In this document: positions 153 to 38,141 of the stretch, one piece after another
How the letters are laid out: each line of letters starts with the position of its first letter
Position numbering within the stretch: the first letter of the stretch is position 1
Source: Mobula hypostoma
Lineage: Eukaryota
Direction of reading: 5' to 3'
Length of the DNA stretch: 64,000 nt
Assembly: GCF_963921235.1 (NCBI RefSeq)
Contig: NC_086101.1
Span: forward strand, 117,676,001 to 117,740,000
The notes under the pieces: model-generated
Told to the model about the DNA's origin: nothing
The model's input: the letters and a program-made list of their open reading frames with translations, nothing else
Database searches by the model: none
Program-made: the position numbers and the translations under genes

Positions 153-302
153 CAAGTACGCCGAGTCGGTAGTTGATAGTGACCACTATAACGTTGCCGT
201 AGCTTGCCAAGACACTTCCCTCGAACATATTCCCTGTTCCCTCCATGTATGATCCTCCATGCACAAACATCATCACCGGCTTGGGACCGCTGTCTCTGAT
301 AT
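153..302 (-). CDS. NLGN2: Neuroligin (NLGN2-like) constitutive coding exon following splice site A, cholinesterase-like domain; 150 nt, phase 1/1
   Basis: Translates (D)[49 protein letters not shown](G), the conserved neuroligin [11 protein letters not shown] block. Acceptor tctctctttcag|AT, donor TTG|gtaaga. MxFxHGG and NMF resemble NLGN2 more than the MVYIHGG of NLGN1/3/4. Family is certain; the paralogue call is less so. Confidence 0.95.
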
Positions 303-372
303 CTGAAAGAGAGAGGAACACGCAAGGTCTTAGGCGCTGCTCAGTTTAACGCCGGCTGCCTCACCCACAGGA

Positions 373-450
373 CAGGAGCTCCCGACCTTTTTTATGCGAT
401 TGACCCCGACCATTAACCAAGGGGCCCTTCGACCCCAGGATGGGAACCCC
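373..450. mobile_element. hAT-like MITE (~80 bp), degenerate copy
   Basis: caggagctcccgacc...ggatgggaacccc termini; homologous to copies at 7422, 10359, 31686 and 61996. Confidence 0.65.
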
Positions 451-1129
451 CCTCCCCCCCACCGTAGGAAATCGAGCAGAAGGAGGTCATACAACCCTCA
501 TTCATTGAGAAGACTTGAGATCTCCCTCAGACCCAAGCCCTGGTACTGCCCACCCGCGAATCTATAGAACCCTGCTTTGAACCACAGGTTGGAACTCTCT
601 AATCTGGCACCTTTGGAACCTGACCAACTCCAGCTTCTCCTCTGAGCATCTCCCTCTGAACTGGAGAACTCTTCTTGCCAGTCTCATGTTATCGGAGCAG
701 ACTCCCCAAACACAAAGTCTGTTCACTTTTGGTATCATGAGCAGTTAGAGATGTTCACGCCATGGAAATTCTCTGGTCCAGCACCCTTGGGTCTGACTGG
801 TACCAGGCCACAAAATAATTCCATATCACAGGAATTTCTTCCCTCCCTCATCATCCACCTCTGAGTAGGGGAACCTTCCTGCTAAGTGTAGACGCTGCCC
901 AGTCCATCACCCAAAGTTCCCCTAAGATAGAAACACTCTCAGCTGAGATTTTAAAAGTTACCCGGGTAGGTTAGTTCACTGTGCTTTAGTATAGATCTTC
1001 ATTAAGATTAGCTCTCAGGTAGATGTTAGATAGAAGTAGTTAACTATTGCAGATCTGTACAAGAGATTCAGAATATATTGGACCACGAGGGACACCAGAC
1101 TACCAGACAGTTTCAACTGGTATAGCAGA

Positions 1130-1188
1130 ATGGCACAGTGAGTGCAGCCACTGCTGCCCAGCACCAGAGACCTGGGTTCCATCCTGAC

Positions 1189-1224
<36 letters not shown>

Positions 1225-1282
1225 TGTGTAAGGCATGTGGGTTTCTACCAGGTGTTCCAGTTTCTTCCCACATTCCAAAGCT
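1130..1282 (+). mobile_element. tRNA-derived V-SINE fragment with internal (TG)n
   Basis: tggcacagtg...ctgggttccatcctgac A/B-box-like head and gggtttc...ggtgttccagtttcttcccacattccaaag V-domain. Confidence 0.75.
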
Positions 1283-1409
1283 GGTAAAAGATCTGAGCTG
1301 AATACAATATTGTTCCTTCCTGTGGACCCATTAAGAAGGTGAGTTGTGCGAGTAGCTCAGATGGAAATCTTCAAATATTCCCATTTAACTTTTAGCTATT
1401 AGAATATAT

Positions 1410-2030
1410 AAGATCTTAAGACCATAAAATATCGGAGCAGAATTAGGCCAATTGTCCCATTGAATCTTCTCCATTATCTCATCATGGCTGATCCATTTCT
1501 CTCTCAGCCCCAGTCTCCTGCCTTCTCCTCGTATCCCTTCATGCCCCGAGTAATCAAGAATCTATCAACCTCTGTGTTAAATACACCCAATGACTTGGCC
1601 TCCACAGCCACCTGTGGCAACAAATTCCACAGATTCACTCTCTAGCTGAAGGAATTCCTCATCGCTGTTCTAAAAGGGCACCCCTCTATTCTGAGGCTGT
1701 GTCCTTTGGTCTTAGACTCCCCCACCACAGGAAACATCCTCTCCACATCCACTCTATTAAGGAAGGCCTTTAAACATTCGATAGGTTTCAATGAGATCCC
1801 CCCTCATTCTTCTGAATTCCAGTGAGCATAGGCCCAGAGCCATCAAACGCTCTTCATATGACAAGCCTTTCAATCCTGGAATCATTTTCACGAACCTCCT
1901 TAGAACCCTCTCCAGTTTCAGCACATCCTTTCTTAGATAACGGGCTCAAAACTGCTCACAATACTCTGAGCGAGGCCTCACTAGTGCCTTATAAGGCTTC
2001 AACATTACATCCTTGCTTTTATATTCTATA
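1410..2030 (-). mobile_element. CR1 LINE 3' fragment
   Basis: Reverse complement of the CR1 ORF2 C-terminus and 3'UTR with (tcttatgg)-like tail; same family as 44265, 50520, 54255, 59730 and 61735. Confidence 0.85.
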
Positions 2031-2409
2031 TACACCTCTTACCGAAATCCACCGTTTTTATTATGTATTGCAATGTGCTGCTGTCAGTCAACAAATTTCA
2101 TGACATGAGCCTGTGATATTGAACCTGATTCTGATTCTGATCCTGGACATCTCTGTAATTACCTGCCACTGCTGAAATGCACTCGTTTAAGAGTCATTGA
2201 AAGTGAGAGTCTTACAGCGCGGAAGCAGGAGTTTCGGCCCAACCCGTCACTGCCGACCAAGATGCCCATCCAACTTTTACTCTATCAACAAGTTTCAGCT
2301 GCATTCCTCTCAAAATTAACACAAATCCTTTGTATTTATCAAGGAAGTCTGAGGCAGGTGTATTTCTAATTTGTACAATGTAAAAAAATGTTCTAATTGT
2401 CCACCTTTT

Positions 2410-2625
2410 CTACGCATTTGACTACTTTGTAAACTTCTAACAGGTCACCCCTCAGCTTCCAACGCTCTAGAAAAAACAACCTAGGTTTGTCCAACCCTCT
2501 CCTTACAGCTCATACCCTTGAATCCTGGTAGCCCTCTTCTTGACAACTTTTCTAAGCCTCCACCTCCTTTCTATAATGGAGCGGCCAGAATTGTAAGCAA
2601 TACTCTAAATGTGACCTGACCAATT
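2410..2625 (-). mobile_element. CR1 LINE ORF2 fragment
   Basis: LVRSHLEYCLQFWPLHYRKEVEA, a CR1 C-terminal motif. Confidence 0.75.
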
Positions 2626-2799
2626 TAATTTCTTTGACCACTGGTGATAGGACAACCCTTTCATGCTTGGAATTAGCCTGGTGAATATTTTCTAGACTTC
2701 TCCAACACTGACAGAACCCTTTTGAAATGTGGACAAACACTACATCCAGAAGTGCAGGAGATTGGTTGAGCTACAGAGGGTGGTTGGGGGGCGTGTTTA

Positions 2800-2995
2800 A
2801 GGGTGGGTGCCATGGTTAACCAGGCATTGGAGTTCAGAATTCAATCCCACAGTAAGGCGCTTGTATGTTCTCCCCATGGCCACGAGGGTTTTCTCTGGGT
2901 GCTCTGGTTTCTTCCCACAGTCCAAAGTAGTATTGGTCATTGTAAATTGTCCCGTGATTAGGCTAGGTTTAAATCATGGATTGCTAGATCAAAGA
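2800..2995 (+). mobile_element. V-SINE copy
   Basis: gggttttctctgggtgctctggtttcttcccacagtccaaag...gtcattgtaaattgtcccgtgattaggctagg. Confidence 0.75.
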
Positions 2996-3179
2996 CCCGC
3001 TTAATATTCCTCCTACCACCACCATGGCCATTCCCTTTCTCTCTTCTGCCTTCTGAGAGAAGATACAGGAGTTTGAAAGCCCGGACAACTGGACTTAAGA
3101 AGAGCTCCTTCCCCGCTGCTGTCAGCTCCTGAACTAGTCACTGCTCTCACATCCTTTTCCCAGTGAGGATGCCACGTTA

Positions 3180-3660
3180 GAATCATAAATTCATAGAAAA
3201 TTACAGAACAGAAACAGGCCCTTCAACCCATCTAGTCTGTGCTGAACCATTCAAACTGCCTACTCCCATCAACCATAGCCCTCTGTACCCCTGCTATCTA
3301 TGTACCTATCCAAACTTCCCTCAAACGTTGAAACCGAGCTCTCATGCATCACTTGTGGTGGCAGCTCGTTCCACACTCTCACAACCCTCTGAGTTAAGAA
3401 GTTTTCCCTCATGTCCTCTTAAACTTCTTACCCTTCACCCTTAACCAATGATCTCTCATTGTAGTCCCACCCAAACTCAATGGAAAGAGCTTGCTTGTAT
3501 TTACCCTATCTACACCTCTCATAATTTTGTATACCTCTATCAAATCTCCGTTCAATCTTCTACATTGCAAAGAATAAAGTTCTAACCTGTTCAATCTTTC
3601 CTTATAACTCAGGTCCACCTGTCCTGACAACACCCTGTAAATGTTCCTGAACTCTGAACT
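3180..3660 (-). mobile_element. CR1 LINE 3' fragment
   Basis: SYKERLNRLELYSLQCRRLNGDLIEVYKIMRG followed by the 3'UTR. Confidence 0.88.
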
Positions 3661-3825
3661 CTTCCTTTTCCATCACTGCCCTTCTCTTGGCACTGTCTCA
3701 GAGTACACCACCGTCTCGGTGACATTCTGTGGTTTTGCACTTGCTGGTATTTATCATTGTTGTACATGCTGCTTACGCTGTGAGCTTCACACAAGGGAAG
3801 AACTTTATTGCCCACCAGCAAACAC

Positions 3826-3907
3826 CTGAATCTGAATCTGAATCTGAATTTGAAATGGAACCTGAACCTGAATCTGAATAAGAATATGAAATTGAATCTG
3901 AATCTGA
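3826..3907 (+). repeat. (TGAATC)n microsatellite (LINE tail expansion)
   Basis: ctgaatctgaatctgaatctg... about 13 imperfect units. Confidence 0.85.
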
Positions 3908-4044
3908 AAGGCATGACCTCACACTCGCCCGCGTTAAACTCCACACTCACCCACTCGCTCGGCCAGTTCAGGTCCATCTGCAGGGTCCTGTTACCTTCAT
4001 CCCAGCCTTCCCTCCCAACTACTTCCATGCCGTTGGTAAACTCG

Positions 4045-4310
4045 GGCAACCACAGTGGTTAGTGTGAGGTTACTACAGCTTTGGGCCTCAGAGTTTGGGG
4101 TTCAATTCTAGGGCCTTCTATAAGGAGTTTGTACATTCCTCCGGGTGCTCCGGTTTCCTCCCACAGTCCAAAGACGCACCGGTTGGTAGGTTAACTGGTC
4201 ATTGTAAATTGTCCCGTGATCAGGCTAGGGTTAAATCAGTGGGTTACTGGGCAGCAAAGGGCTGGATGAGCCAGATGGACCCGTTGTGCATTTTATCTCC
4301 AAATAAATAA
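4045..4310 (+). mobile_element. V-SINE, near full length
   Basis: tRNA-like head, V-domain (ccgggtgctccggtttcctcccacagtccaaagac) and aataaataaa tail. Confidence 0.85.
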
Positions 4311-4764
4311 ACAGACGCTCTGCCCACGCTGCAGATCAATAATGTGAGCAGCAAGTAACTGAGGGCCCCATGCGTGTGGGTGAGGAGGGGACGAGGTGGG
4401 AATGTGGGAGAGGTTTGGTTATAGGAAATAATATGCGGAAATGGGAACTGATGAGATTGCTCCGCGAGCCGGTGGAAACTCGATGGACCAAATGGCCTCC
4501 ATCCATTTGTATCAGTTCATTATTATCATCACATACTAAATAGTTCATCCATTACATACGTCAAGGTAGCTCAAAGAGAAGGAGGCTGCAGAATACAGAG
4601 AAAGGGCAGTGCAGGTAGGCAGGCAAGGTGCGAGGGTCATGGCAAGGTAGACTGGGAAATCAAGAGTTCATCTTTAGCAAATAGCAGGGCAGGAGCTGTT
4701 CTTGAGCCTGGTGGTAGTTGTTTCCAGGTTTTTGTATCATGGGGTGGGGGTGGACAAGAGATAC

Positions 4765-5103
4765 TGGTTTGATTGAGTTGATCTTCCATCCTGGCAAACG
4801 TTTCGTATACCAAGCGAGGAGACACCGTCAGTGCGCTGTTGATTATGGTGTGTCCCCCGAACGCTTGGCCTTTACGTGCTTTTCAATCAGCTGATTGCTC
4901 ACTATTTCAGAAACTCAATGTGATGTGGGGAGGAGGTCTCGTCGCTGACTGGTTGTGTAGTGAACTTTGTGCGTTGTGGTCTGGAACTTTGCACAGAGAT
5001 GTCTCCTCGTGTGATGACAAGACATTGAGGAATAAATTGCCAAGAACAGAGATCAACTCAACCCGACCACCAACCACCCAAGCCACACATTTTCCGAATT
5101 ATT
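4765..5103. mobile_element. Penelope-like element remnant with inverted termini and degenerate hammerhead motif, inserted in a Rex-Babar fragment (4560-5385)
   Basis: Minus 4836-4772 gcactgacggtgtctcctcgcttggtatacgaaacgtttgcc...gatcaactcaa mirrors plus 4991-5061 gcacagagatgtctcctcgtgtgatgac...gatcaactcaa. Confidence 0.55.
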
Positions 5104-5788
5104 TCCAGGAGAGAGACTGGTCGGGCTGGGAGTGGTCCTTCATTATGTTGACTGCTTTCTCGAGGCAGCAGGAGGTATAGATGGAGTCAATGCAAAGGGG
5201 TGGGGTCTGGTTTCTGTGATGTTCTGAGCTGCATCCACAACTCTCTACAGTTTCTTGTGTCCTGGGCAGAGCAGTTGCCATCCCAAGCCATGATACTTAT
5301 GTAAAGATGGGCAAGGGTCATCAGGGAGAGGCCCAATGTCCTCAGTCTTCTGAAGAAGTAGAGGTGTCGGTGTCCTTTCTTAGAACTGAATAGAATTTAG
5401 ATAGGTGGAACTGCTAGATCTGATGATTGGTCCTCCGTCTCTGGCTGGCCCTCACTGGTGAGGGTGGCATTCTTTGCCCCATGCCCCCGAATGGGGCTCT
5501 TTCCTCCAACTCTGCCTGCTGTGAGGCACTTTCCAGATACAAGTGGAGGGACATCCCAGCAGGAGCAGCTGTCTTTGTAAGCAAGCACCTTTGCATCATC
5601 CCCTACCTGGCCCACGTGTCCTTGAAACAAACCCTACGCCCCTCCGACTCAAGGCGCACTACAAAAGCTCCAGTTAAACTGCGGATCTTAATCCCTCCCC
5701 TCAGTGCAAAGTCACTACAGTGAGAGGCAGCTCGCCCGTCGGTTAACAAAATAAACAGAGAGAGAGACTTTGGAACCAAACAGCGTAC

Positions 5789-5887
5789 TTGGTTGGTTGT
5801 GGAGTGGCTGACTAGATGAGCTGGAGTCAAAGCTGCGAGCTGGTTGGCTCCAACCAGGACTCTTTCTGTGCAGCAGAGGAAGAGGGT
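5789..5887 (-). CDS. Candidate novel 99-nt cassette exon at neuroligin site A: (D)PLPLLHRKSPGWSQPARSFDSSSSSQPLHNQP(N)
   Basis: Long polypyrimidine acceptor ttttctccctctcttcccttttcag|AC and donor CAA|gtacgc. Length 99 nt, phase 1/1, no stop in the neuroligin frame, in a non-repeat island. No transcript evidence available. Confidence 0.5.
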
Positions 5888-6019
5888 CTGAAAAGGGAAG
5901 AGAGGGAGAAAACTGAAAAGAGTGAAAAATAAAGAAGGCAGTACTCTTTCCCCTCCATCCCCACTCCCTCCCACACTTCACGCTAACAAACTCTCTGGCA
6001 GACTCCTGTTGCAAGCCCT

Positions 6020-7395
6020 GACTGGTTACATCATGGTATTCAAAGGTGTGGGGATGTATAAGCTGCAGAGGGTAGCGGACTCTGACCAATACCTCATGGG
6101 CACATCCTCCCCACCACTGGCAGTATTTACAGAAGATGCTGCCTCAAGAAGGCAACATCCATCATCAAAGATTGGGACTATGCTTTCTTCTTGCAGTTGC
6201 CATTGGGTAGAAAAGTACAGAAACAGAAAAACGCGGTGAGTTTTGCAACTAATACCCTTGGTCCACGTTAACAGCTCAACCAACCTCATTCTGCAGGTTA
6301 TCCATTACTGTTGGAGCACTCTCTGTGGGAGCCACCATACAAAAGGTACTGGATCCAGTCCAGTACATCACAGGTAAACCTCTCCCAGCCATTGAGCACG
6401 TCTACATGACATGCTGTTGTAGGAAAGCAGCATCCATCATCAGAGATCCCCACCACCCGGGACATGCTCTCTTCTCACTGCTGCCGGCAGGTAGAAGGAA
6501 CAGGAGCCTCAGTACTCACACCACCAGGTTCAAAAATAGTTACTACCTCTCAACCATCAGGTCCTTGAACAAAAGGGGATAACTACACACACTTGTCCCA
6601 TTATTCAAATGTTCCCACAACCAATTATCTCACTTTAAGGACTTGTTATCGCATTACCTCATGTTCTCATTATTTATTTATATTTGCATTTGCACAGTTT
6701 GTTGTCTTCTACACTCTGGTTGATCTTTCATTGATCCTGTTTACAGTCACTATTCTATAGATTTGCTGAGTATGCCCACAGGAAAATGAATCTCAGGGTT
6801 GTGTATGGTGACCTATGTGTACTTTGATAATAAAATTTACTTTGAACTTGAACATTGAAATAGATTGCACACCAGTGGCTATACTTCATTAGGAGTTGAG
6901 GAGACCTGATGCACCACCAAAGGTGTTAGCAAATTTCTGCCGATGTACAGTGGAGAGCATTGTGACTGGTCACATCACGGTCTGGCACAGAGGCTCCCAT
7001 GCACGGGACTGCAAGCCACTGCACACTGTTGTAGACTGAGCCAACTTCATCATGGGCACTAGCCTCCCAACTGTAGAGGATACTTTCAAAAGCTGACGCC
7101 CCAAGAAGGTGGCACCCGACATTAAGGACCCTCACCACCTGAGACATGCCCCCTTCTTGCTAGGACCACTGAGGACCCTGAAGATTCATACCCAGCATCT
7201 TCTTCCACTCTGCCACCGGATTTCTGAACGGTCCAGGAAACCATAATCACTATCTCACTTTTCCTCTTCTTTTCCAATTTTAAATTTTACTTTTTATTGT
7301 AACTTGTAGCAATTTTTTATTATCTTGCACTCTACTTCGATCACACAACAACAAATTTCACAGTATATTTCACTGATAATACGCCTGATTCTTAA
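6020..7395 (+). mobile_element. Cluster of three Rex-Babar-type LINE 3' fragments
   Basis: RKAASIIRDPHHPGHALFSLLPAGRRNRSLSTHTTRFKNSYYLSTIR motif, and tails ending actttgaac and cctgattct. Confidence 0.85.
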
Positions 7396-7421
7396 CAGAA
7401 TGAGACAATACCCTTCTAACC

Positions 7422-7500
7422 CATGTGCTCCCAACCACTTTTATGCCATGGACCCCTGCCAATAACTGAGTGGTCCATGGGTGCAGGTTGGGAGCTCCTC
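7422..7500. mobile_element. hAT-like MITE with 8-bp TSD
   Basis: TIRs catgtgctcccaacc / ggttgggagctcctc; flanks ttctaacc and ttctaccc (7/8 match). Confidence 0.75.
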
Positions 7501-7880
7501 TTCTACCCAAAGGGGATGTGTGCATGATACCTAAATTCTCGTGGATTTGTATAATCCAAAAAGCCTGTTCCAAAGGACATGAATGGGAGGACTATGGTCT
7601 GGATGCAGGCCGATGGGACGAGGCAGAATAATAGTTCAGAGTGGACTTTATGGGCCAAAGGGCTTATTTCTGTGCAGCAGTTTTATCTGATTCTATGACT
7701 CTCTCTCTCACTCTCTACAGCCTCCTGCGCTATTACACTTGCTCAAAGAACAGTGTCTCATTTTCCAGCCTTCCTAACTCAATAAAAAGTTCTCAAACTT
7801 CACTCATTTACATAGAAATCCAGTGGACAAGTAGACCCTTCTGGCCCTTCCGGTTATGCCCCCCAGCATCTCACAGATTT

Positions 7881-8125
7881 AACCCTAGACCAATCACTGG
7901 GCAGTTTACAATAAATCAGAATCAGGTGTAACCCCAGACCAATCACTGGACAGTTTACAATGAATCAGAATCAGGTTTAACCCTAGACCAATCACTGAAC
8001 AGTTTACAATGAATCAGAATCAAGTGTAACCCTAGACCAATCACTGGACAGTTTACAATGAATCAGAATCAGGTGTAACCCTAGACCAATCACTGGACAG
8101 TTTACAATGAATCAGAATCAGGTGT
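7881..8125 (+). repeat. 49-bp tandem repeat, 5 copies
   Basis: Unit aaccctagaccaatcactggacagtttacaatgaatcagaatcaggtgt starts at 7881, 7930, 7979, 8028 and 8077. Confidence 0.92.
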
Positions 8126-8810
8126 AATATCACCAGCACACATTGTGAAATTTGTTGACTTTGTGACAGCAATACAATGCAATACATGAGAAAAAAAGAC
8201 TGTGAATTATAGTAAACATACTTAAAATACTTAAGTAAGTAGTGCAAGAATAGAAATAAAAATGTAGTGAGGTAGTGTTCATGGTTTCAATGTCCATTCA
8301 GAAATCTGATGGCAGAGAGGAAGTTGTTCCTGAATCGCTGAGTGTGTGTCTTCAGGCTTCTGTACCTCCTTCCTGATGGTAGCAATGAAACAGGGCATGA
8401 CCTGGGTGATGGGGATCCTAAAAAATGGCCGCCACCTTTTTGAGGCATGTTTTTGAAGATATCCTGGATACCATGGAGGCAAGTGCCCATGATGGATGTG
8501 ACTCAGTTTACAATGCTTTGCAGCGTGTTTCAATCCTGTGCAGTGTCCCCCACCCCTATACCAGATGGTGATGCAGCTGGTTAGAATGCTCTTCACAGTA
8601 CACCTGTAGAAATTTGGTGACATACCAAATCTCCTGTAACTCCTAATGAAATATAGCCGCTGTCCAGCCTTCTCTGTGGCTGCATAGATATGTTGGGTCC
8701 AGGATAGATCCTCAGAGATATTGACATCCAGGAAATTGAAATTGCTCACTCCTTCCACTTCTGATCCTTCTAAAGGACTGGTGTGTGTTCTCTCGTCTTA
8801 CCCGTCTTGA
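8110..8810 (-). mobile_element. Rex-Babar-type LINE 3' fragment
   Basis: ISEDLSWTQHI...QRLYFIRS...FYRCTVKSILTSCITIWY and LLPSGRRYRSLKTHTQRFRNNF. Confidence 0.88.
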
Positions 8811-9209
8811 AGCCCAATTAACCTACCCAGTACGAATTCGGACTGTGGGGGGAAAGTGGAGAAAAGCAAGGAAACCCACATGTTCACCAAGAGTAAATAC
8901 AAATTCCTTGAGAGATGGCATCAAAATTGAACTCTGAACTCTGACCCTCCCTCCCACATGTAACAGCAGCGCACTAACCACTACGCCATCATGGCACCAA
9001 TTTAGATAGTTCAATTTCTGTCTGTATCGGAATTAGCCAATATTGCCTGTTATTATCTTGGCACAGTGTTTTATTGTCCCTTTTTTCTATCAGCTGATCT
9101 ACGGACATGTTGTACGTTGCCATAAGCAACACATTACACAAAGGAACTTAATTTGTCCCCCCAAAAAAATTGTCCTTAACACAGGACACATTTACACAGG
9201 TCCTTCTAG

Positions 9210-10010
9210 AGTCATAGAGTCATAGAAAACTACAGCACAGAAACAGGTCCTTTGGCCCATCTAGTTTGTCCTTAACCACTTAAGCTGCCTACTCCCATCA
9301 ACCTGCATCCAGGCCATTACCTTCCATACCCTTCCATCCATGTACCTATCCAAAGTTCTCTTAAATGTTGAAATCAAAATCACATACACCACTTGCGCTG
9401 GCAGCTCGTTCCACACTCTCACCACTCTCTGAGTGAAGAAGTTTCCCCTCATGTTCCCCTAAACTTTTCACCTTTCACCCTTAACCTATAGCCTCTAGTT
9501 GTAGTCTCACCCAACCTCAGTAGAAAAAGCCTGCTTGCATTTACCCTATCTATACTCCTCATAATTTTATATACCTCAATCAAATCTCCCCTCAATCTTC
9601 TATATGCCAAGGAATAACTTTCTAACCTATTTAATCTTTTCTAATAACTTAGTTTCTCCAATCCTGGCAACAACCTTGTACCTTTTCTCTGTACACTTTC
9701 AACCTTTTTTTACATTTTTTTTCTGTAGGTAGGTGACCAAAACTGCGCACAATACTCCAAATTAGGCTTCACCGATGTGTTATACAACTTCAACATAACA
9801 TTCCATCTCCTGTACTCAATATATTGATTTATGAAGGCCAATCTGCCAAAAGCTTTCTTTACGACCCTATCTACCTGTGATGACACTTTCAATAAATTAT
9901 GAACCTCTATTCCCAGATCCCTTTGTTCTACCACACTTCTCAGTGCCCTACCGTTCACTGTTCAAAATCTACCCTGGTTGGTCCTTCCAAAGTCCAACAC
10001 CTCACACTTG
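9210..10010 (-). mobile_element. CR1 LINE 3' fragment
   Basis: EQRDLGI...DRVVKKAFG...PNLEYCAQFWSPTYRK and NFFTQRVVRVWNELP. Confidence 0.9.
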
Positions 10011-10358
10011 TCTACCCACGTCATCCCTCTGTTCTACCATTCCACCCTCTAATAAGTGAAAAACTTGTCTTCTCTTCTTCCCAGTTCTGCCAGGTCTCAG
10101 ACATGAAACACTCACTCTGCCACCTCCCCACAGATGGTGTCTGACATGTCGAGTGTTTTCAGCATTTTTTTAAAATTTTGGGCTTCTGACATCTGTGGTT
10201 ATTTTTATGATCACCAAATTTCACACCCATTTAGCAGAATGATAAATTCTTTTTCCTACAGCTGTCATGAACCGGGAATTATTTTTAGCACTCAAAGCCG
10301 AGACAGGTGGACAGCTGGTATCATTTATCCAAGGTAAAAGTATCTGATACATTTAAGA

Positions 10359-10437
10359 CAGGGGTTCCCAACGATTTTTATGCCATGGAACCCTACATTA
10401 ACCAAGGGGTCCGAGGACCCCAGGTTGAGAATTCCTG
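10359..10437. mobile_element. hAT-like MITE with 8-bp TSD
   Basis: caggggttcccaacg...ggttgagaattcctg flanked by atttaaga / atttaagg. Confidence 0.8.
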
Positions 10438-10469
10438 ATTTAAGGTGAGAAGGAGAAGTTCAAAGGAGA

Positions 10470-11060
10470 TAGACCATAGAGTCATATGAAACTTCAGCAC
10501 AGAAACAGGCCCTTTGGCCCACCTAATCCATGCTGAACCACTTGGACTGCCTACTCCCATCGAACTGTACTAGGACCATAGCCCTCCATACCCTTACCAT
10601 CTACGTACCTATCCAAACTTCTCTTAAATGTTGAAATTGAGCTCACATGGACCACTTGTGCTGGCAGCTCGTTCCATATGACTCTCTGAGTGAAGAAGTT
10701 TCCCATCATGTTCCTCTTAAACATTTCATCTTTCACCCTTAACCCATGACCTCTAGTTATCCCACCCAACCTCAGTAGAAAAAGCCTCCTTGCATTTACC
10801 CTATCTATACCTCTATCAAATCTCCCCTCAACCTTCTACGTTCCAAGGAATTGAGCTCTAACCTATTCAGTCTGATAACGCAGGTCCTCCAGTCCCAGTA
10901 ACATCCTTGTAGATTTTCTCTGTTCTCCTTCAACCTTATTTACACCTTTCCTGTAGGTCAGTGACCAAAACTGCACACAATAATCTAAATGAGGCCTCAC
11001 CAATGTCTTATACAACTTCACAATAACGTTCCATTTCTTGTACTCAATACATTGAGTTAT
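10470..11060 (-). mobile_element. CR1 LINE 3' fragment
   Basis: TRGHGLRVK...NFFTQRVIWNELP. Confidence 0.88.
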
Positions 11061-11149
11061 GACGTGCGGGATAGTTTATTTTTTAATTTGGATAGGGGAG
11101 TACCTGGACTGGTACTGACAGCGAGGCGGTGGAGGCAAGTACTTAAATA

Positions 11150-11392
11150 TTTATTTATTTGTTGAGATACAGCACAAAATAGGCCCTTTGGGCCCTTCCA
11201 GCCACACAGCCCAGCAACCCTCGATTTAACCCTAGCCCAGTCACAGGACAATTTACAATGTCCAATTAACCTATGTGGCACAACTTCGGACTGTGGGAGG
11301 AAACCCACTCAGTCATGGTAGGAATGTACAAGCTCCTTACAGCAGCGCAAGGAATTACAGCGTTGTGCTAACCATATGCTACCATACCACCC
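11150..11392 (-). mobile_element. V-SINE copy
   Basis: Reverse complement of the SINE body (ggactgtgggaggaaacc on plus) with a tatttatttattt tail. Confidence 0.8.
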
Positions 11393-11451
11393 TATGATGG
11401 ATGTGTTTAGGAAGTTCTTAGACATGCCCTGGGACGTGCAGAGAATGGCAG

Positions 11452-13204: not shown

Positions 13205-13224
13205 ACACACTACACACACACACA

Positions 13225-27320: not shown

Positions 27321-30300
27321 GATATGGATTGGCTGAGAAGAATGGTCTAGAATGGCCAAGAATGGAGTTTTCCATTAGCCAGCAACAGAGTTCTCCATTG
27401 GCAAGGAACAGATAACTGCATTGACCAACAGCAGACATTGTTTTGCTGAACTGTTCTTGTATCAATTATCCAGAAATACAGATGAGATTTGGCCAGGGAT
27501 AATGATTGTGATTGGTTAGGACTGGCTATCTGAAGGAGCAAGTAACACCAAATTAGATTGCCAGGATCCATGATCTGGACTGACTGGGAAAAGGGATCTG
27601 GTTTGGCTTAGGATTCAAGCTGGAGTGATTGGTAAGCAAGATGGAATTAGCATGGAACAGAGAACTAGAGTCCTGGGACGGAAATTCTAGGTTGGTCATA
27701 AATAAAGAATTATTTAGCCAGGAATGAAGCCTGGATTGGCCAGGAATGAAAATCCGGGACAATCAGGGGCAGAATTGTGGAATGGCAAATGATGTGAATC
27801 ATGATTGGTTAGGGCTGAAAATTTGATTTGGTAAGGAAAGAAATGTGGATTCTGCAAGAATACAGGTCATGGATTACCCACAACTGGGCATCTTCAATGG
27901 CCAGGGTCAAATGTCTGGAGAGGCCAGAAACAAGAGGTTTGGTGTGGCCAAGAACTAAGATCTGGGTTGGCCAGAACCAATAATCCATATTGACAAGGAC
28001 TAGAGTTCTGTAACGACCAAGTTTAGGGTTTTTGATTTTGCCAGGAAAGGAGATTTCCACAAGTGTAGTCATCTACATAGATTGTCCTAAGCTATCGATC
28101 TGGAATGCCCAGGAGCAGAGTTAATGATTGGGAGAAGAGTATTGGATATGAAGTGACATCTGCATTGTCTAGTAATGGGAGTTGGTGTGGTCAGAAGCAA
28201 AGATCTGTTCTCACTGGCAATGCAGAGCTGGATCTGATTGTGGTGGAGATTGGGGTTGACCAGGGCAGAGTTCTAGATTGGATACCAACAGGGCTCTGGG
28301 ATAGCCAAGGTAAGTAACCAGATACTACCAGGAGCAGATACTCAGGGTGGCCAGAGTACAAAGTGGAGTGTCTAGATCAGCAGGGAGTGCTCAACTGACT
28401 TAGACAGTATCTGACTAGGGTCTTTGTCCAAACACTGAGATCAACATCAGTCCAATGATGAGATCTGGGTTTGCCTGCAACATATTTCTGAATTAGTCTT
28501 GGACTATTCAGTTCTGGTCAAGGAGAGCAGTATGCATTAGGCAGGGAGAGTGGTCAAAAGTGACCAGCAATAAACTGAGAAACGTCAGAGTATGAGGTAG
28601 GCATGGTCAGAAATCAGAGTTCTCAGTTTACCAGAGGTGGGGTGCTGAATAGCGACCTAAAGTAACAAGAATGGAGAACTGCAAAAACAAAGGAATAGCT
28701 TGGACAGACAGGTTAGTCAGCATGGAAGAGTTGGGAAGAAGTGCCTGTTTCCACACTGTGAAGATCTGGAATAGCCAGGAACAGGAGTTTGTGGGACCAG
28801 GAAATCAAATTTACTCGAGCCAGGTACATGTGACTGAGATGGAGATTTGAAGGGTGCCTGGTGTGAGGTGGGTGTGCTCATGGTCAGAGTTCAGATATGG
28901 AGAAATGATCTGCAGTCAGGAGTACATATCAGAGTGCCCACCAATGATTGACCAGGGATAAGGGTTTACAATGGCCAGGAATAGTAAGCAGTTTTGCCCA
29001 CAAACAACAGTTTTGATTGGCTATGAACAGAAATGAACATATGGGATGAAAGACCAGTTTCTGTGCTGTAGTGCTCTAGGACTCTATATATCTGGAGCAC
29101 TAGGACAGGAGATCTGGAATGGCCAGGAATAGAGGTCTGGTTTGGTAAATATTGGAGATCGAGGTTAATATGGAACAAAGATCTGGAATGTACGGGAATG
29201 GAGATCAGGATTGGACAGGAGTAAACTCCAGATAGGCTAGGGATGGATATAATTGTACTGGCCGGGAATAGGAAAAAGAACTGGAGCAGCTTAGAGTTGA
29301 GATCTGAGCTAGCCAGGGAATTATATCGAATTGTCACGAATGGAAATTTGGAGTAGACAGGGTGGGAGATCAGAGAGTAACTGAAAAGGGAATTCACCAG
29401 GAATGGAGATATCCAATGACTGGGCTGTGATCCAGATTGGCCAAGATTAGAGAGATGGATTGATCAGAAAGCAGTCTCCATTGGTCAAGTGTAAGAGTCT
29501 ATATTTGTCTGATAACAGATGTCTCCATTAGCTGGAATCAGAGAGCTAGACTGGCCATCAAGAAATGAGCTCCATTGGCTAAGTGTAGGAACCTGGTTTG
29601 GCCAAGAAGAGAGATCAAAATTGGTCAGGAATAAAGAGATTGGCAAAAGGTCAAAGCAAGTATTGTCCAGTGAGGCAGATAGGGTTTGTCTGGGAACAAG
29701 GGTGCTCATTCCTGAACAACAAAGACCTGAACAACAGAAGTCAAGAACAGAGAATTGGATTGGTAAGGAATAGAGACTGGACATGGATAAGAATTACAAT
29801 CTGGAGCGACAGGAAGGAACATCTAGATTGGCCAGGACTGGGAGTCAGGATTGACCAAATATTTGGATGGTGCAAGATATAGTTTTGGAGAAGCCAAGAC
29901 TGGAGATTTCAAGTCCTCAGTGAGTTTGGGATGATCGGGAACAGAGAAGGGGAAGAGTCAGAATGGAGACCTGAGATGGTTGATCTGAGTTGGTCAAGGA
30001 CAGAGTTCTCAGATGGCTGAGAACAGGCATTGGTGACCACCAACAGACACCTGTAGTGCCAAGATATGGAGGTCTGAACCACAGAAGACTGGAGAAGTGG
30101 AATGGGCAGAAACAGATGTAGATTGGTGCGGACCAATCATTCAGCAGTGGCAAGGAGATATCCATCAGAATGGAATGGAGAATGCGTTTGGCCACAACCA
30201 GTGATTTCCATTGGCTGAGATTGGAGCGCTACTCCAGCCAGTACAGAGATTTCAATTGGCTGGGAATGGGAGCTAGACTGATCAAGCCAAAAAAACCATT

Positions 30301-31685
30301 AGCTGAGATTGGGGCTGAGTAGACTGGCTGGTACAGGGATTTTCACTGGCCAGGAACAGAGATTTCAGGTATTGGAAGATGACAGGCCAAGATCAGAGAT
30401 TTTCATTAGCGAAGAACATTTATTTGTATTAGCCAAAATGATAAATCAAACTTGACCAAGAATTTAGATAATATGCTTTCCAAGAGTAAAAATCTGAATG
30501 GAGCAGGAACAGAAGTTTATGTTGTCCAGAATACAGGTGGAATTTGGCTAGGAATGACAATTTGATTGGCTGAGAAAATAGATATTATGGGCCAGGATGT
30601 GAAGAACTGGGATGGATAGGAACTGAGATCGAGCTTAACAAGAAACGAAGATTTAAACTGGTCGGTAACGCGATCTAAATTGCCCTGGAACCTATGGTGG
30701 CTCCGGAAACATGGCAGGACTGTGCTGCTTGTTGGCAAAAATGACACATAATTCACAATGTTTCAATATACATATGACAAATAAAACGAAGATCTGAAAT
30801 GGCCAAGAATAAATGTCAGAGTCAGCCAAGAATGAAATTGGGTTGTAAAAGAGATCTTAACTCTCCCGGGATGAGGATTTGGAATGGACAGTAAAGGACA
30901 GGAACTGGACTAGCCAAGAATGGAGATTCAGATAACCCTGAGATGGAAAGCTGGATTAGTCAGAACCAAGATCTTGTGTGGCCAGAAATGAAGATCAGGA
31001 GTTGTCAAGAACAGATGCCCAAGGACAGAGATCACAGCTCCAGTATAGTCAGGAACAGAGGTTAGTTTGACCACGAGCAGACAATCTGATTGTCTGGGAA
31101 GAGCAATCTGGGATGGAGATTTGGAATAAGGTTCAGGAAGAATGGCAGAAACAGAGCTCAGGTGAGCCAGGAATGGACACTGATCGACATCGGAGATCAG
31201 CAGATTAGCTGGAACAAAGATTGCCATTGGTTGGATGCAAAGATCTGGAATGGCCCAGATTGGACATTTATAATGGTCACCAAAAGACCTCAAGATTGAC
31301 AATGGCAAAGAAAGAGGCTTCTTGGATCATCCTGGAAAGGGCATCTAAATTGACCAGGATCAGAGATCTTGATTGATAAAGAGCAGGGATTAGGAATGGC
31401 AGAATGGAGATCTGGATTGGTCAAGACCACCGGAGATCAGATTGTTCAGCAATACAAATATGGATTGTCAGAACCAGGGATCAGGAGTTCAGGAATTGAG
31501 ATCTGGATTGGTCAGGACCAGAGATTGGAGTGTTCGGCAACACAGATATGGATTGTCCAGGATCAGCAGAGATTTTGATTGGGCAGGACCAATTTAGAAA
31601 CACAGATCTGGATTGGTTAGGACCAGAGGTCAGTGGTGATCAAGAACAAAGATCTGGATTGGCCAGATGTGTTAAAGGTGTACAG

Positions 31686-31765
31686 CAAGGGTTCCCAACC
31701 TTCTTTATGTCATGGGCCAATACCAGTAAGCAAGAGATCTGTGGACCCCAGGTTGGGAACCCCTG
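31686..31765. mobile_element. hAT-like MITE
   Basis: caagggttcccaacc...ggttgggaacccctg; flanks gtgtacag / gtgtgcaa. Confidence 0.78.
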
Positions 31766-32479
31766 GTGTGCAAGAACACATATTTGGATTGGCCAGGACC
31801 AGAAGTCAGAGATGTTCAAGAATGAAGATATCAATTGGCCTGGAGTGGGGTGATTGCAGTAGCAGCTGTAAATCTCCATTCTAGACCACCCCTAACCAGT
31901 GCCCATCCTTGTCCTAGCTAATCTCTACATCTATCTCTATATCTGGCGATGGCCAGTGTAAGTCTCCATTTTTGGCCAATCCAGGCCTTTGTTCTTGCCA
32001 TTACAGATCTTCATTTCTGGCCAATCAAAAGCTCCCTTCCTTGCTCATTCACATCCTTGACCCTGAGGAATGCAAATGCAGGAATGGATCTGGACTGATG
32101 GAGTAGGAGATCTGCCTTGTCCAGGAGGGAAAATCTGGATTAACCAAAGGGAGAGATGAAGCTTAGCCTGGAACACGAACCAAGATTGGACAGGAATAGC
32201 ATTCATCAGGAATGAGGAAAGAGCTTGGCCTACATCACCAATTATGATTGGCTAAGAAACTGTTAGGTGCAGCGAACAGGAACTGAGAACAGGATTAACG
32301 ATGAAGGGATAGGACCAGAGATCCTGAAATCCTGAAAACTATGGCCTTGAGTCGCAAAGAATTGAGGTCAGCTTATTGAGAAAAGAAGGATCTGGATTGA
32401 CCAGGAATGGAGATTTAGTGTCAACAGAGAGAGATGGGTGTGAGCAGGACCTGAAGTGGAACTGAAACAGGGAAGGATG

Positions 32480-33620
32480 TCAGGGTGAGGGAAGAGTGGA
32501 ATGCGGCAGCGGTGGGAGTGAATGACAAGACAGTGGTGGGAGGGGGGAGAGCGATGGGACAGTCGGGGGAGAAGGGGAGGGGGGAGAGACACGGGGGGTG
32601 GTGGGAGAGGGGGATGGGGATGGGACAGTGGTGGGAGAGGGGGACGGGGATGGGACAGTGGTGGGAGAGGGGGACGAAACAGTGGTGGCAGAGGGAGAGA
32701 CAGAACAGTGGGGGGAGAGGGGGAGAGAGACAGGATGGTGGGGGGAGAGGAGGAGAGAAATGGGAGGATGGTAGGAGATGGGGAGGGGCAGAGGTCAGTG
32801 GTGGGAGAGGGCAAGACAGGACAGTGGGAAGAGAGGGGGAGAGAGACAGGATAAAGACGTGAGAGGGGGAGGGGATGGGAGGATGGTGGGAGAGAGGGAG
32901 GGAGACAGGACAGTGGTGGGAGAGGGGGAGAGTGATGGGACAATGGGGGGAGCGGAGGGGAGGGAGGGCAGACAGTGGTAGGAGAGGAAGGGGGACGGTG
33001 GTGGGAGAGGGAAGGGGACGGTAATGGGAAAGTGATGGAACGGTGGTGGGAGAGTGATGGAACAGTGGTGGGAGACTGGGAGACAGGTACAGTTTGGGAA
33101 CGGTGGAATTTGCAGGCAACATCTGAATAGAGGGAGAGATGGAGTAAAGAAACGGGGCAGGAATGGCAGGAGGGGGGGGAAATAGGACTGTAGAGGGGCT
33201 GCGACATATTTGGGAATTTGAGGGAACAATGCTCTAGCCTTGCAGCAGACAGACAGAGAAAGTGTCCTGAGTTGGGGGAGGGGAGCCGGGTGAGGCTAAA
33301 GTGTGGTGGTGTCACAGAGAAACAGAGAAGGAGAAGAGAGAAAGTATGGGTGTGTGAGAGTGAAACAGAGAAGGAGAAGAGAGGAAATATGGGGGTGTGA
33401 CAGAGAGACAGAGAGACGGAAAACAGGAAGTATGGGGTGTGACAGAGAAACAGAGGGGGGAAGAGAGAAAGCATGGGGGTGTCTGAGCAAGAACCAGCAA
33501 GAGTGGGGGTTGAGAGAGAAAAGGAAGTGAGGAGAAGAGGAGGGGAAGAAAATTGGAGAGAGAGAGATGGAGAAACAGGAGGAGAAAGTATTGGAGAAAG
33601 AAGGGATTGAATACTATGGG
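32480..33620 (+). repeat. G/A-rich low-complexity tandem repeats (gggacagtggtgggagaggg units, then gggtgtgacagagaaacagag units)
   Basis: Visible repetition; the source of the 418-aa and 233-aa Pro/Ser/Leu pseudo-ORFs. Confidence 0.88.
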
Positions 33621-34089
33621 ACAAAGAGGTAGGATGAGGATGACTTGGAGAGGCATCAGGCTTTGAGGTGATGGTATCCAGACTAGATAGATATAAGGAT
33701 AATAAGGGTATGGAGGGCTATGGTCCTCACAGGAGGGCTGGTCAATAGCAGTAGGCAGTGTAAATGTTTTGGCATGGACTAGATGGGCCGAAGGGCCCGT
33801 TTCTGTGCCACAGTTTTCTATGACTCCCTGACTGAGGGGAAGAAAATGTTGGAGCCAGGAGTGAGGTGCTGAGGCAGAGGTATGCGTAGGCTGGCCAGAG
33901 GCAGAGAGCAGCGAGTTCTGCCATACCCGATGGGCGGAGTAGCAAGGTTGGGGAGGAGAGACACTCAGAGATTCTGGGACTGACAGAGGTCCAGGGTGAA
34001 GAGAGGGGTGATTGTGATACAGAGATACAACATCAGAGAGGGAGAGCCTGGAGCTGTCAGATCTGCATTGTAAAGGAACGGTAATCCAG

Positions 34090-34470
34090 ATTGGGTCGGA
34101 GTGGTGACCTGAAGTGGGTTCAACAGTGACCTGGAGTGGAATAGAATCATGTCCTGGAGTGGGATGGAACAGTGAAATGGAGTGGATTAAAATGGTGACC
34201 TGGAGTGGATTGAAATGGTGACCTGGAGTGGATTGGAATGGTGACCTGGAGTGGATTGAAATGGTGACCTGGAGTGGATTGAAATGGTGATTTGGCGTGG
34301 ATTAACATGGTAACCTGTAAAGGGTTAGAACAGTGGGTTACAGTGGTGACCTGGACTGGGTTAGAATGGTGACCTGGAGTGGATCGAAATGGTGACCTGG
34401 ACTGGGTTGGAACAGTGAACTGGAGTGGATGAGAAGGGTGACCTGGAGTGAGATACAGCGGTAACCAGGA
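34090..34470 (+). repeat. Homogeneous 23-bp tandem repeat (atggtgacctggagtggattgaa)
   Basis: Units start at 34192, 34215, 34238, 34261 and 34284, with more diverged copies on each side. Confidence 0.9.
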
Positions 34471-35274
34471 GTGGAGATGGTGATTTTGTCTGGATTGAAA
34501 GAATAATGCAAAATGGGTTAGAAAGGCATCAGAATTGGAATGGAGGCAGAAAATGGATTGGGATCAAGGGAGTTCTGGAGTGGACTGGCATAAGAGATGT
34601 AGAGATACAGGAGGTACTGTATCAGCAGTCAAGACTGGCGTAAGAGGTACAGGAGAGGCAATACAGTGTTAGGAGAGGTGTTTGTTGTGGTCTGCACAGA
34701 GCTTTATTAAGGGGGAACAGCACGGAACATGGGCATGGAGTTGGAAGCTGGACCTTGGAGCAGAGATTCACACCAGTCTGCTGAACAGCTAACCAGGGAA
34801 TCCAGGAGGTGAGAGGGAAGGACAAACGTGCGGAGTGGTGGGGGGTGGGTTGGGTGACTCGGGCAGAGGGAGGGAAATGTACCGTGAAAGAAAGGTGTGG
34901 ATCAGAGATCTGGTGTGAAGGAAGGGTGTGAATCAGAGATCAAGTGTAGAGGACACAAGTGGACCTAGCACATCTGGAGTTTAGGAAGACTAATTCCAAC
35001 ACTTTGAGCAATGTACTAGAGTGAGCTGAAGATATGGGTGGTGGAATAGTGGATCCAACATCTGGAATGTAAAGAGAGTGCATTTAACATCTTGAGGAGG
35101 AAAAAATGGTCTAACATCTGGCATTAGAAGAGTGGAGAATGGATCTGGCATAGGTGAACAAACGGCCTAATATCTGGATCATGTCAGAGATCAAGCAAGA
35201 TGGATCCAACATCTGGAGTGGGGAACAAGAATGGAAGTCAACATCTGGACCATATCAGAGACCTGGAGTTCATG

Positions 35275-35680
35275 ACCATGCTCCCTTCTCGCTGCTACCA
35301 TCAGACAGGTGGTATAGGAGTCTTAGATGCCACGCCACCAAGTTCAGGAACAGTTATTACCCCTCAACATCAGGCTCTTGCACTAGCCTCAACACTGAAC
35401 TGATTCCACAACCTATGAACTCACTTTGTGGGACTCCACAACTCACGTTCTCAGTATTATTTATTCATATATTTATCAATTATTCCTTTTCTTTTGTTCT
35501 TGCACAGTGTCTTCATTTGCGAATTGGTTTCAAATATTGGTTATCAGCCTTGTCTGTAGTTTTTCATTGAGTCTATTGTATTTCTTTGCCCTTCTGTGAA
35601 TGCCTGCAATAAAATGAATCTCAAGGTAGTATATGATGACATAAATGTATTTTGATAATAAACTTAATTTGAACTTTGTG
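35275..35680 (+). mobile_element. Rex-Babar-type LINE 3' fragment
   Basis: HAPFSLLPSDRWYRSLRCHATKFRNSYYPST. Confidence 0.85.
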
Positions 35681-36339
35681 CATGGGAGAGGGAGGGGATC
35701 TTTCTAATATTTTCGGCCATTCATTCTTTGGGGTTTTTTTTCTTCTGTTTTGTGGATGTCTGTGAAGAGTAAGAATTTCAGGTTGTATACATTCTCTAAT
35801 ATCAAATTAACCTTCTGGAGTGAAGGAAGAGAATGGGCCCAACATCTGGACTATATGGACAACCCGGAGCAGAGGGCAGGGAAATGGATCCAGCATCTGG
35901 AGGATGCAGTTTAGAGTGAGCCTGAGCAAATATCCAGGATGGATCATTGGAGCACTGAAACGGCTGAGATCTGGGAGAGAACGGCTGAGGGGGGTGAGGT
36001 GCGGGAGCAAGATACCTCGTCGGTTCCCTTGGTCAGCAGAACCAGATATCTGGGCTATGTTGCCCTTGGGCTTTGCAGTGGCCAGGAAGAGAGATTGGAG
36101 GAGAGCTGGTCACAGGGGGCATCTAGTTCTGCGGTGGTGGGGATGGGGGCTGAAATCTTGAGGAAGAAAGGAGTCGGGGGGAGGAGGGGAGCGTCGCTGA
36201 TGAACAGGTCCCTGGGATCCAGAGCGAGTTCATCAGGAACACCAGGCATTGGTGGACCCGGGGGCTGCAGGGGCCTCAGTGAGGACGGAGGACCTCAGAT
36301 CAGGGAGTGTGGAGAGAACATTAACAGTGGAGCCCGAGG

Positions 36340-36690
36340 ACTGAGTGAGCTAAGGCTTTTCCTCTTTGGAGCAATGGAGGATGAGAGGTGACTTCTAGAG
36401 ATGATAGGAGGCATGGACAGTGCCTTTTTCCCAGGGCAGCAATGGCTAATTAATACCAGAGGACATCCGTTAAGGTGGATGGAGGGAAGTTTAGGGAAAG
36501 TTTTTTTTACACAATGTGATGGGTGCATGTGGTGACGGTAGAGGCCGATACATTAGGGACATTTAAAGGACATGGATGAAAGAAAAATGGAGGGTTATGT
36601 AAGAGGGAAGGGTTAGATTGATCGTGGAGTTGGTTAAAAGGTCGGCACAACGTTGTGGGCCAAAGTTCTCATACTGTGCTGTAATGTTCC
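36340..36690 (+). mobile_element. CR1 3' fragment
   Basis: ctaaggcttttcctctttggagcaatggaggatgagaggtgac...ggcacaacgttgtgggccaaag. Confidence 0.8.
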
Positions 36691-37058
36691 GCCTTCTGTG
36701 TGAGGTAGAAATTACCTAGTAAGGCTATAGAGCAACCCAGGGTCGGCAAATAGGCAGAGGGATACCGAGGGACAAACTTAACCAGACAGGCTTCTAATCA
36801 CTGCCATTGGAAGGTAGGACATGGGAAGAGCCCATCACCCATTGGGACTCAGCGCCTCTCCCCCTCAGCCCCGACGTTCGCTGGCGCGGAGAAAGAGAGA
36901 GTGGTACATGGTCCCACTTTTTGCGGCAACAGGCAAGGGAGCCTCAGCAAACCTCTGACACTCTCGGGCAGTGCCCAGCAGTTGATGGCCAGTCTGTCGC
37001 GCTCTTGGCTCGATACCTGCCAGGTGCCTGAACAACGCACCGTTCTCCACCAGCTCAC

Positions 37059-37106
37059 CCAGCGCCTCCACCGGACAGACCGGGATCAGTGATTCCGGGA
37101 CTCCTG
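37059..37106 (-). CDS. Candidate novel 48-nt cassette exon at neuroligin site A: (A)GVPESLIPVCPVEAL(D)
   Basis: Acceptor accttccctccgtcccttcag|CAG (NAGNAG; 45 nt if the second AG is used) and donor TGG|gtgagc. Phase 1/1, stop-free, CpG-rich non-repeat island ~1 kb downstream of A2. No transcript evidence. Confidence 0.45.
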
Positions 37107-37330
37107 CTGAAGGGACGGAGGGAAGGTGATGAAGCTCTTCGTCCGAGGAGAGCTTTCGGAGAAGTCAACCGAGGTAGGAATTGGAGAAACACATGAGGGG
37201 TTGGAGACGATCCAACTGGGATATTTTGGGATTTTACTGGACCAGGAGAGACCTGTCCGGCTCTAACTTCTTGAGGCCTAACACTATAGTTTCTTTGAGA
37301 TTGGAATCAATTGTGGTACTAAGGACAGAG

Positions 37331-37332
<2 letters not shown>

Positions 37333-37376
<44 letters not shown>

Positions 37377-37620
37377 GATCCCTCACGCACAGACACACAT
37401 AAACAAAATAACGTTTGCACATGCACACACACGCATCAGTATATACACACTAGAAATAGCAAAAACATACGTAGTGAATAGATTGACATTCTACGTGTAT
37501 GTATGTGGTACTTATACTGCGCGCACACCGCAACAACGCGTGCACGCGCACAAGCAGAAAATAACACACATACACACAACACGCACACGCGCAAAATAAC
37601 ACGCACGCGAGTGCGCACAC
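37333..37620. repeat. (CA)n plus mixed CA/CG alternating purine-pyrimidine tract
   Basis: About 20 CA units, then acgcgtgcacgcgca and acgcacgcgagtgcgcacac. Confidence 0.85.
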
Positions 37621-38064
37621 AGAGATCAAAACAAAACACTGCATAACAATATCACTGCCATTGGAAATGCCTTGTGCCAAATTACTAGATTAACACTGCA
37701 GACTAGATCTCACTTAAACTCTCCTTTCAATTCTTTGGTCCCCCAAACCTCCCCTCCCTCCACCAGCCAACCCCCACCCTCTCCACACCCAACACTCTTT
37801 TGGGTCATAAAATGGATAAAAAAATAAAGAACATTTTAAATATTTTAAAAGCCAAACTCTTTGAAAGCTTACGGAACATGTAAACGACTGATTTGAAAAC
37901 AGACTTGTGAAAAGAACAAAAAAAAGCACATTTATTGAAAGAGTGCAAAAAAGTTTCGGAAGATGAATAAAAAAGAAGACAAGCTTTTGAAATAAAAGGA
38001 GATTTGAAAAAAAAGGAAAAATCCGGAGGAGGGTGGAAGGGGGTGAGGTGGGAGGTATTGTTAA

Positions 38065-38070
38065 CATGCA
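38065..38070 (-). promoter_or_regulatory. RBFOX-type UGCAUG intronic splicing element ~15 nt downstream of the A2 donor
   Basis: Minus strand reads G|gtatttttccccaaTGCATGttaac. A second TGCATG lies at 37420-37425. Confidence 0.55.
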
Positions 38071-38084
38071 TTGGGGAAAAATAC

Positions 38085-38141
38085 CTTCATCTTCAAGACC
38101 ACCAAATGCGCCGTTATCGTCGGGTTTTTTTGTGAGCGGAC
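38085..38141 (-). CDS. NLGN2: Neuroligin alternative splice-site-A insert exon (A2 type), 57 nt, phase 1/1: (G)PLTKKPDDNGAFGGLEDE
   Basis: GPLTKK start and acidic ...EDE end match the site-A inserts of NLGN1/NLGN2. Acceptor ctctcctcccgttttttctggtcttag|GT, donor GAAG|gtattt. Splices in frame to exon 153-302 (G+AT = Asp). Confidence 0.92.

Follow-up and report, generated by a model that had tools for sequence, protein, structure and literature searches.

A shark-conserved candidate cassette exon after A2 at splice site A of a neuroligin-2-like gene in the ray Mobula hypostoma

How many cassettes can a neuroligin gene hold at splice site A? The site is small and relevant to disease, and only two inserts are described for it in the literature: A1, A2 or A1A2 in NLGN1 and NLGN3, and a single A2-like insert in NLGN2 and NLGN4 (PMC7486126; PMC7182215). 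The question is raised by a stretch of 64,000 nucleotides from the ray Mobula hypostoma (contig NC_086101.1, positions 117,676,001 to 117,740,000; here called the window), which contains part of a neuroligin gene on its minus strand. An earlier note, made from the sequence alone, had proposed that A2 is followed in this gene by two unrecognized in-frame cassettes of 48 and 99 nucleotides, here called candidate 1 and candidate 2, and that the three could be used in up to eight combinations. The proposal of additional cassettes gained comparative support for candidate 2, which is conserved in a shark and used in a shark gene model, and none for candidate 1, whose motifs are at chance level. We rate as a little better than even the reading that the locus has A2 and one real, low-inclusion cassette, candidate 2, common to ray and shark, and that candidate 1 is a pseudo-exon. 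The note had also taken site-A inserts to modulate the interaction with neurexin, which is imprecise: they are reported to have little effect where the neurexin protein domain is concerned, and A1 acts through heparan sulphate (PMC7486126).

A2, both candidates and the next constitutive exon were read directly from the minus strand, where the earlier note had placed them (Table 1). The constitutive exon starts with DIRD and forms the downstream boundary of site A, and A2 lies upstream of it. The preceding constitutive exon, which ends in YVPTED, is outside the window, and its final G was inferred from homologues. With this G, every combination of junctions keeps the frame (junction codons G+CA, G+AC, A+AT and G+AT), as had been claimed. 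Both candidates are phase 1/1, a multiple of three in length, stop-free, bounded by AG and GT, and single-copy within the window, in which two runs of N (48712–48853 and 53732–53868) were left unaltered. The protein encoded by the constitutive exon is 100% identical to a protein model from the bamboo shark Chiloscyllium punctatum (GCC19333.1; P0006), and the closest solved-structure match of this exon is neuroligin-2. The shark protein carries a carboxylesterase domain (PF00135) and is 88–89% identical to tetrapod NLGN2; its core matched neuroligin-2 best among solved structures (217 bits), followed by NLGN3 and NLGN1 (about 208 bits) and NLGN4X (197 bits). By sequence similarity, the gene is neuroligin-2-like, with a modest margin over the other paralogues.

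The frame and boundary properties of the candidates proved to be commonplace. Within the 37.8-kb intron, 1,626 units of 27–150 nucleotides are stop-free, phase 1/1, bounded by AG and GT and a multiple of three in length; 55 of these units have 48 nucleotides and 31 have 99. These bare criteria are not above chance and prove nothing, because 1,626 units in one intron satisfy them, and splice sites were therefore scored as well. The scoring used a crude position-weight matrix with vertebrate consensus frequencies, and its scores are relative only. By combined splice score, candidate 2 ranked first and candidate 1 third among the 1,626 units (the latter being the second-best locus), and both were comparable to the true A2 exon (acceptor 6.4, donor 1.9) and the constitutive exon. 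The acceptor of candidate 2, a long CU-rich tract followed by CAG, scored 12.0, the best in the intron, as compared with 8.5 for the acceptor of the constitutive exon.

High scores also arose elsewhere. When any frame and length were allowed, a combined score of 10 was reached by four loci (5887, 8842, 28678 and 37106), with candidate 2 at the top; on the opposite strand, used as a control, three units reached it. Upstream of A2, where 26 kb were scored, one in-frame unit that had arisen by chance (9.3) beat the real A2 exon (8.4). Strong pseudo-exon-like loci thus occur by chance about once per 10–25 kb, or about three to four times per 38 kb on either strand, and it is unremarkable that one of three such chance loci should be open and a multiple of three in length. 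Two minus-strand units, 8802–8842 (41 nucleotides) and 28632–28678 (47 nucleotides), have splice scores as high as those of candidate 1 and would break the frame; they illustrate chance sites within the intron itself, or are possibly poison exons. We also observed arrays of G-rich 30-nucleotide and 23-nucleotide tandem repeats at 32371–34500, CT-rich on the gene strand, with open frames of up to 449 codons that encode a Pro/Ser-rich pseudo-protein, a trap for exon calls based on open reading frames in this intron.

Such counts, on the control strand as well as on the gene strand, speak for a reading in which both candidates are functionless chance pseudo-exons. For candidate 2, this reading is contradicted by comparison with a 66-kb contig of the bamboo shark (L001), which spans 7.3 kb upstream of the candidate 2 island and the whole 10-kb interval from there to the constitutive exon. 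BLAST of the window against this contig returned two collinear single-copy matches only, the constitutive exon (86% identity) and a 178-nucleotide island around candidate 2 (window 5936..5759 against L001 7264–7445; 76% identity, E 5e-30); the other matches were dispersed repeats. The island covers about 1.4% of the compared sequence; no other non-exonic island was conserved there, and this one falls on the predicted exon with the highest rank. In the constitutive exon, 127 of 150 nucleotides are identical between ray and shark and 21 of the 23 differences fall at third codon positions (dN 0, dS 1.94), a dS at which neutral sites are saturated between ray and shark. Given that candidate 2 is conserved at this level over a divergence that has saturated synonymous sites and left the remaining intron unalignable, we find it barely credible that both candidates are products of chance.

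The conservation follows the outline of an exon. Candidate 2 is 99 nucleotides long in both species, with 76 of 99 nucleotides identical and no indels, and indels of 3, 5 and 11 nucleotides lie in the flanks just outside it. The CU-rich tract, the CAG acceptor and the donor GTA(C/T)GCTG are all conserved in the ray–shark alignment. The upstream flank agrees in 36 of 50 columns and has one 5-nucleotide indel, and identity fades within about 50 nucleotides; a possible branch point lies about 35 nucleotides upstream of the acceptor, and there is no A between the two AGs upstream of candidate 2. On the donor side, 8 of the first 12 intronic positions (+1 to +12) are identical and 18 of the next 38, with indels, so that identity fades after about 12 nucleotides. 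The reading frame that site A would require is the only one open in both the ray and the shark sequence, and the shark protein model contains a 34-residue stretch, directly before the constitutive exon, that aligns without gaps to the translation of candidate 2. The earlier note had looked to the orthologous introns of other cartilaginous fishes for conserved splice sites and codon-like substitutions; the alignment with the shark bore out the first part, with splice sites, the 99-nucleotide length and the frame all conserved, and it spoke against the second, as set out below.

Substitutions within candidate 2 do not follow codons. The two species differ at 23 of 99 sites (K = 0.28), and 20 of 34 residues of the peptide are identical, about as many as 23 random substitutions would leave. 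By this measure the constraint on candidate 2 is clearly at the nucleotide level, several-fold slower than at neighbouring synonymous sites, and the peptide appears not to be constrained. Several results weigh against the reading of candidate 2 as an exon. Its dN/dS is 0.85 (dN 0.277, dS 0.326), the differences are spread 8:9:6 over the codon positions with no codon periodicity, and a frame such as this one would stay open after 23 random substitutions with a probability of 0.52. The donor, CAA/GTACGC, is weak (score 0.6), and the conservation comes from a comparison with one other species. The substitution pattern, as far as it can be read from two sequences, fits a minor-form alternative exon and a non-coding conserved element equally well.

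The second of these possibilities leads to a different view of the locus, in which the candidate 2 island is a non-coding element, conserved but never translated, candidate 1 is a chance occurrence and site A has A2 only. Such an element could enhance transcription, regulate splicing from within the intron or serve as a decoy exon in the processing of a long intron. The evenness of the constraint over codon positions, with its high dN/dS, and a frame that would be open by chance about half the time both agree with this view, as does a conserved GGTTGG..CCAACC inverted repeat in candidate 2 that might be a protein-binding site; an assembled sequencing run described below, which has the constitutive exon and nothing of the island, points the same way. 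Against it, conservation peaks exactly at the pyrimidine tract with its CAG and at the GT donor, indels are absent over exactly 99 nucleotides and several occur in the flanks, and an island of about one-seventieth of the compared sequence would have to coincide with the top predicted exon of 1,626. Folding scores for the island were unremarkable (z −0.45 and −0.66), and a scan of window positions 2920–64000 against Rfam gave no match. We consider the non-coding view possible, though on the unlikely side. The exon reading is favoured because conservation sits at the pyrimidine tract and AG, at the GT, and across a gap-free interval whose length is a multiple of three.

Two narrower interpretations of the island were rejected. 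A structured RNA or miRNA finds no support in the folding scores or in Rfam, and a recursive splice site does not agree with an acceptor that is followed by AC rather than GT. Separately, we note that the inverted repeat, GGTTGG-NN-CCAACC at 5835–5853 on the minus strand, is kept in both ray and shark and could form a hairpin or a protein-binding site.

The combination of low Ks, high Ka/Ks and conserved flanks is the published pattern of minor-form alternative exons. Candidate 2 shares with this class a dS of 0.33 as against 1.94 in the exon next door, a dN/dS of 0.85, conserved flanks, a weak donor and a CU-rich tract, in a comparison that covered two species.

The shark gene model provides a further line of evidence. 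In this model the orthologue of candidate 2 (L001 7318–7416) is spliced to the constitutive exon, with the following exon after it. An independent gene finder has thus accepted the splice sites of candidate 2 in another species, which is a statement about a model and does not imply RNA support. A point on the opposite side is that the model begins with a spurious exon, an open frame within a GC-rich patch that an intron of 108 nucleotides connects to the rest, and it may therefore be largely or purely ab initio. A search of proteins for further short models with a peptide like that of candidate 2 found this model alone, the proteins listed in a search with the NLGN2 region were all from bony vertebrates, and the conserved acceptor core had 0 matches in a metagenome scan.

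Two side observations concern such models. The GC-rich patch (L001:6750–7250; about 61% GC, CpG observed/expected ratio (o/e) about 0.75) lies directly upstream of the shark orthologue of candidate 2, and the spurious first exon starts within it; the equivalent flank in the ray is CpG-poor (o/e 0.1–0.25). In addition, P0102, P0111, P0142 and many short teleost NLGN3 fragments are ab initio models whose start lies in the intron and whose frame continues across the acceptor to the constitutive exon (...ATLADIRDTGAK), which shows how frequently site-A sequence in such models is an invention of the gene finder.

Sequencing runs gave an indication in the other direction. Two small runs from one organism, X1 and X2, which we guess to be RNA, contained all sampled words of the constitutive exon. 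In a second search of runs, made with candidate 2 and equal flanks, a share of about 0.4 of the words would indicate the exon only and a share of about 1 genomic or unspliced sequence. X1, which is probably RNA, contained 0 of 16 words of the candidate 2 island, a result that tells against the exon reading, and several larger runs of related organisms had a share of 0.69. If X1 is RNA, candidate 2 is absent from the assembled dominant isoform. This evidence is weak, because contigs lose rare variants and the tissue of X1 is unknown, and it counts only against constitutive or major use.

From the anatomy, the conservation, the substitution pattern and the use of candidate 2 in the shark gene model, all of which were observed, we infer splicing in vivo at low inclusion under the control of acting regulators. 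Candidate 2 would be a minor-form, probably neuron-regulated alternative cassette, the inclusion of which would add a Ser/Pro-rich loop of 33 residues at site A. Selection on it would act mainly on RNA, that is, on the splice signals, the CU-rich tract with its many UCUU and CUCUCU motifs, internal splicing signals and a length that is a multiple of three, and not on the peptide.

Candidate 2 resembles A1 and A2 in its position in the gene (the intron before the DIRD exon), its phase of 1/1, its short length in a multiple of three and, as we predict, its alternative use. It differs from them in being 99 rather than 51–60 nucleotides long, in lying downstream of A2 and in encoding a Ser/Pro-rich peptide, whereas A1 is basic with two cysteines and A2 is acidic with GPLTKK. 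For A1 and A2, high conservation among vertebrates is reported; in contrast, the peptide of candidate 2 is nearly unconstrained, and purifying selection on the peptide, as for A1 and A2, was not found. The exon upstream of the candidates is itself a clear A2 member, with a GPLTKK start, an acidic C-terminal half and a length in the range of about 17–20 residues, and shares its GPLTKK...(D/E) pattern with the A2 inserts in the listed neuroligin proteins. No A1-like exon was found in the 26 kb searched upstream of A2. Around and downstream of A2, CpG o/e reaches 0.9–1.5 over about 1.2 kb (37250–38400) despite low GC; this is the maximum of the window, for which the median is 0.27, and a possible sign that the block around A2 is constrained or unmethylated.

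Extra inserts at site A are also found in teleosts. Among NCBI models of teleost neuroligin-2a, five have non-A2 in-frame inserts of 17–20 residues exactly at site A (P0206, P0326, P0197, P0205 and P0324), namely Pagrus major X3, Scomber japonicus X3 and X5, Chanodichthys erythropterus X6 and Chelmon rostratus X4. The Pagrus X3 and Scomber X3 inserts have their first six residues in common and are otherwise poorly conserved. No description of these non-A2 inserts was found in the literature searched. Databases thus already contain extra site-A cassettes of NLGN2-type genes, in the form of protein models, and by analogy with several non-A2 inserts at the same position, such cassettes are plausible in the ray. 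Like candidate 2, the teleost inserts are in-frame and share its place in the protein; their conservation between species is poor, more than one per species is possible, and they have no convincing sequence relationship to candidate 1 or candidate 2. An SPGW motif common to candidate 2 and Pagrus nlgn2a X3 was rejected as a sign of homology and is most likely a coincidence, as it is missing from the homologous Scomber insert and present in no other protein. Among primate and mammal NLGN2 models, P0116 and P0060 have inserts starting with GKGAGT (8 and 13 residues) in place of the canonical A2, which may reflect alternative splice-site use or model artefacts.

Candidate 1 stands differently. 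It sits about 1 kb downstream of A2 in a 300-nucleotide patch with 62% GC and a CpG o/e of 0.70. The frame around it is open for 99 codons with three in-frame donors on offer, and its openness is therefore not specific to the 48-nucleotide unit. Its splice-like motifs are within the range that chance supplies, and its use would put one unpaired cysteine into an extracellular loop. No similarity to candidate 1 was found in the 7.3 kb of shark sequence upstream of candidate 2, GC-rich patch included; the shark contig ends there, short of the position of candidate 1. We conclude that candidate 1 is most likely a chance pseudo-exon. It is unsupported rather than refuted, which tells against this part of our reading, and we would give its use as an exon only a small chance.

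The eight-combination code of the earlier note requires that both candidates be used together with A2, in a lineage-specific or an ancestral arrangement. In its favour, both are top-ranked in-frame units, the frame is kept at all junction combinations, candidate 1 lies in a single-copy CpG-rich patch close to A2, and the Scomber X3 and X5 models are an instance of at least two different non-A2 inserts in one species. The code finds no footing in the remaining evidence: the support for candidate 1 is limited to motifs that arise by chance at the rate given above, candidate 1 is part of a long open GC-rich stretch rather than a delimited exon and brings in the unpaired cysteine, the peptide of candidate 2 is near-neutral, and X1 lacks the candidate 2 island. 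We regard such a code as very unlikely. Highly unlikely, too, is a history in which cartilaginous fishes keep a three-cassette site-A module (A2 with inserts of 16 and 33 residues), candidate 2 being at least as old as the shark–ray split, as an old combinatorial code that was lost or replaced in bony vertebrates.

Table 1. Features of the site-A region, with positions in the window
Feature	Position	Strand	Description
A2-type site-A cassette exon	38141..38085	minus	57 nucleotides, phase 1/1, GPLTKK start, acidic tail
Candidate 1 (AG..GT unit)	37106..37059	minus	48 nucleotides, phase 1/1, open frame, CAGCAG (NAGNAG) acceptor, GTGAGC donor, one Cys
Candidate 2 upstream flank, conserved	5888..5936	minus	candidate branch point TTCAC, close upstream AG, A-free CU-rich tract, CAG
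Candidate 2 (candidate cassette exon)	5887..5789	minus	99 nucleotides, Ser/Pro-rich 33 codons, conserved between ray and shark
Candidate 2 donor-side flank, conserved	5759..5788	minus	GTAYGCTG, alignment with shark
Constitutive neuroligin exon after site A	302..153	minus	150 nucleotides, phase 1

For the annotation of long introns, these results mean that bare in-frame criteria, by which about 1,600 units in one intron qualify, should be backed by conservation or by RNA before such units are called as exons. If our reading of candidate 2 is true, it would be a clean case of an exon maintained by selection at the level of RNA instead of the peptide. And if it is a true third cassette, its splice sites and frame have been kept since the divergence of sharks and rays, and neuroligin site A would be more plastic than the mammalian picture suggests.

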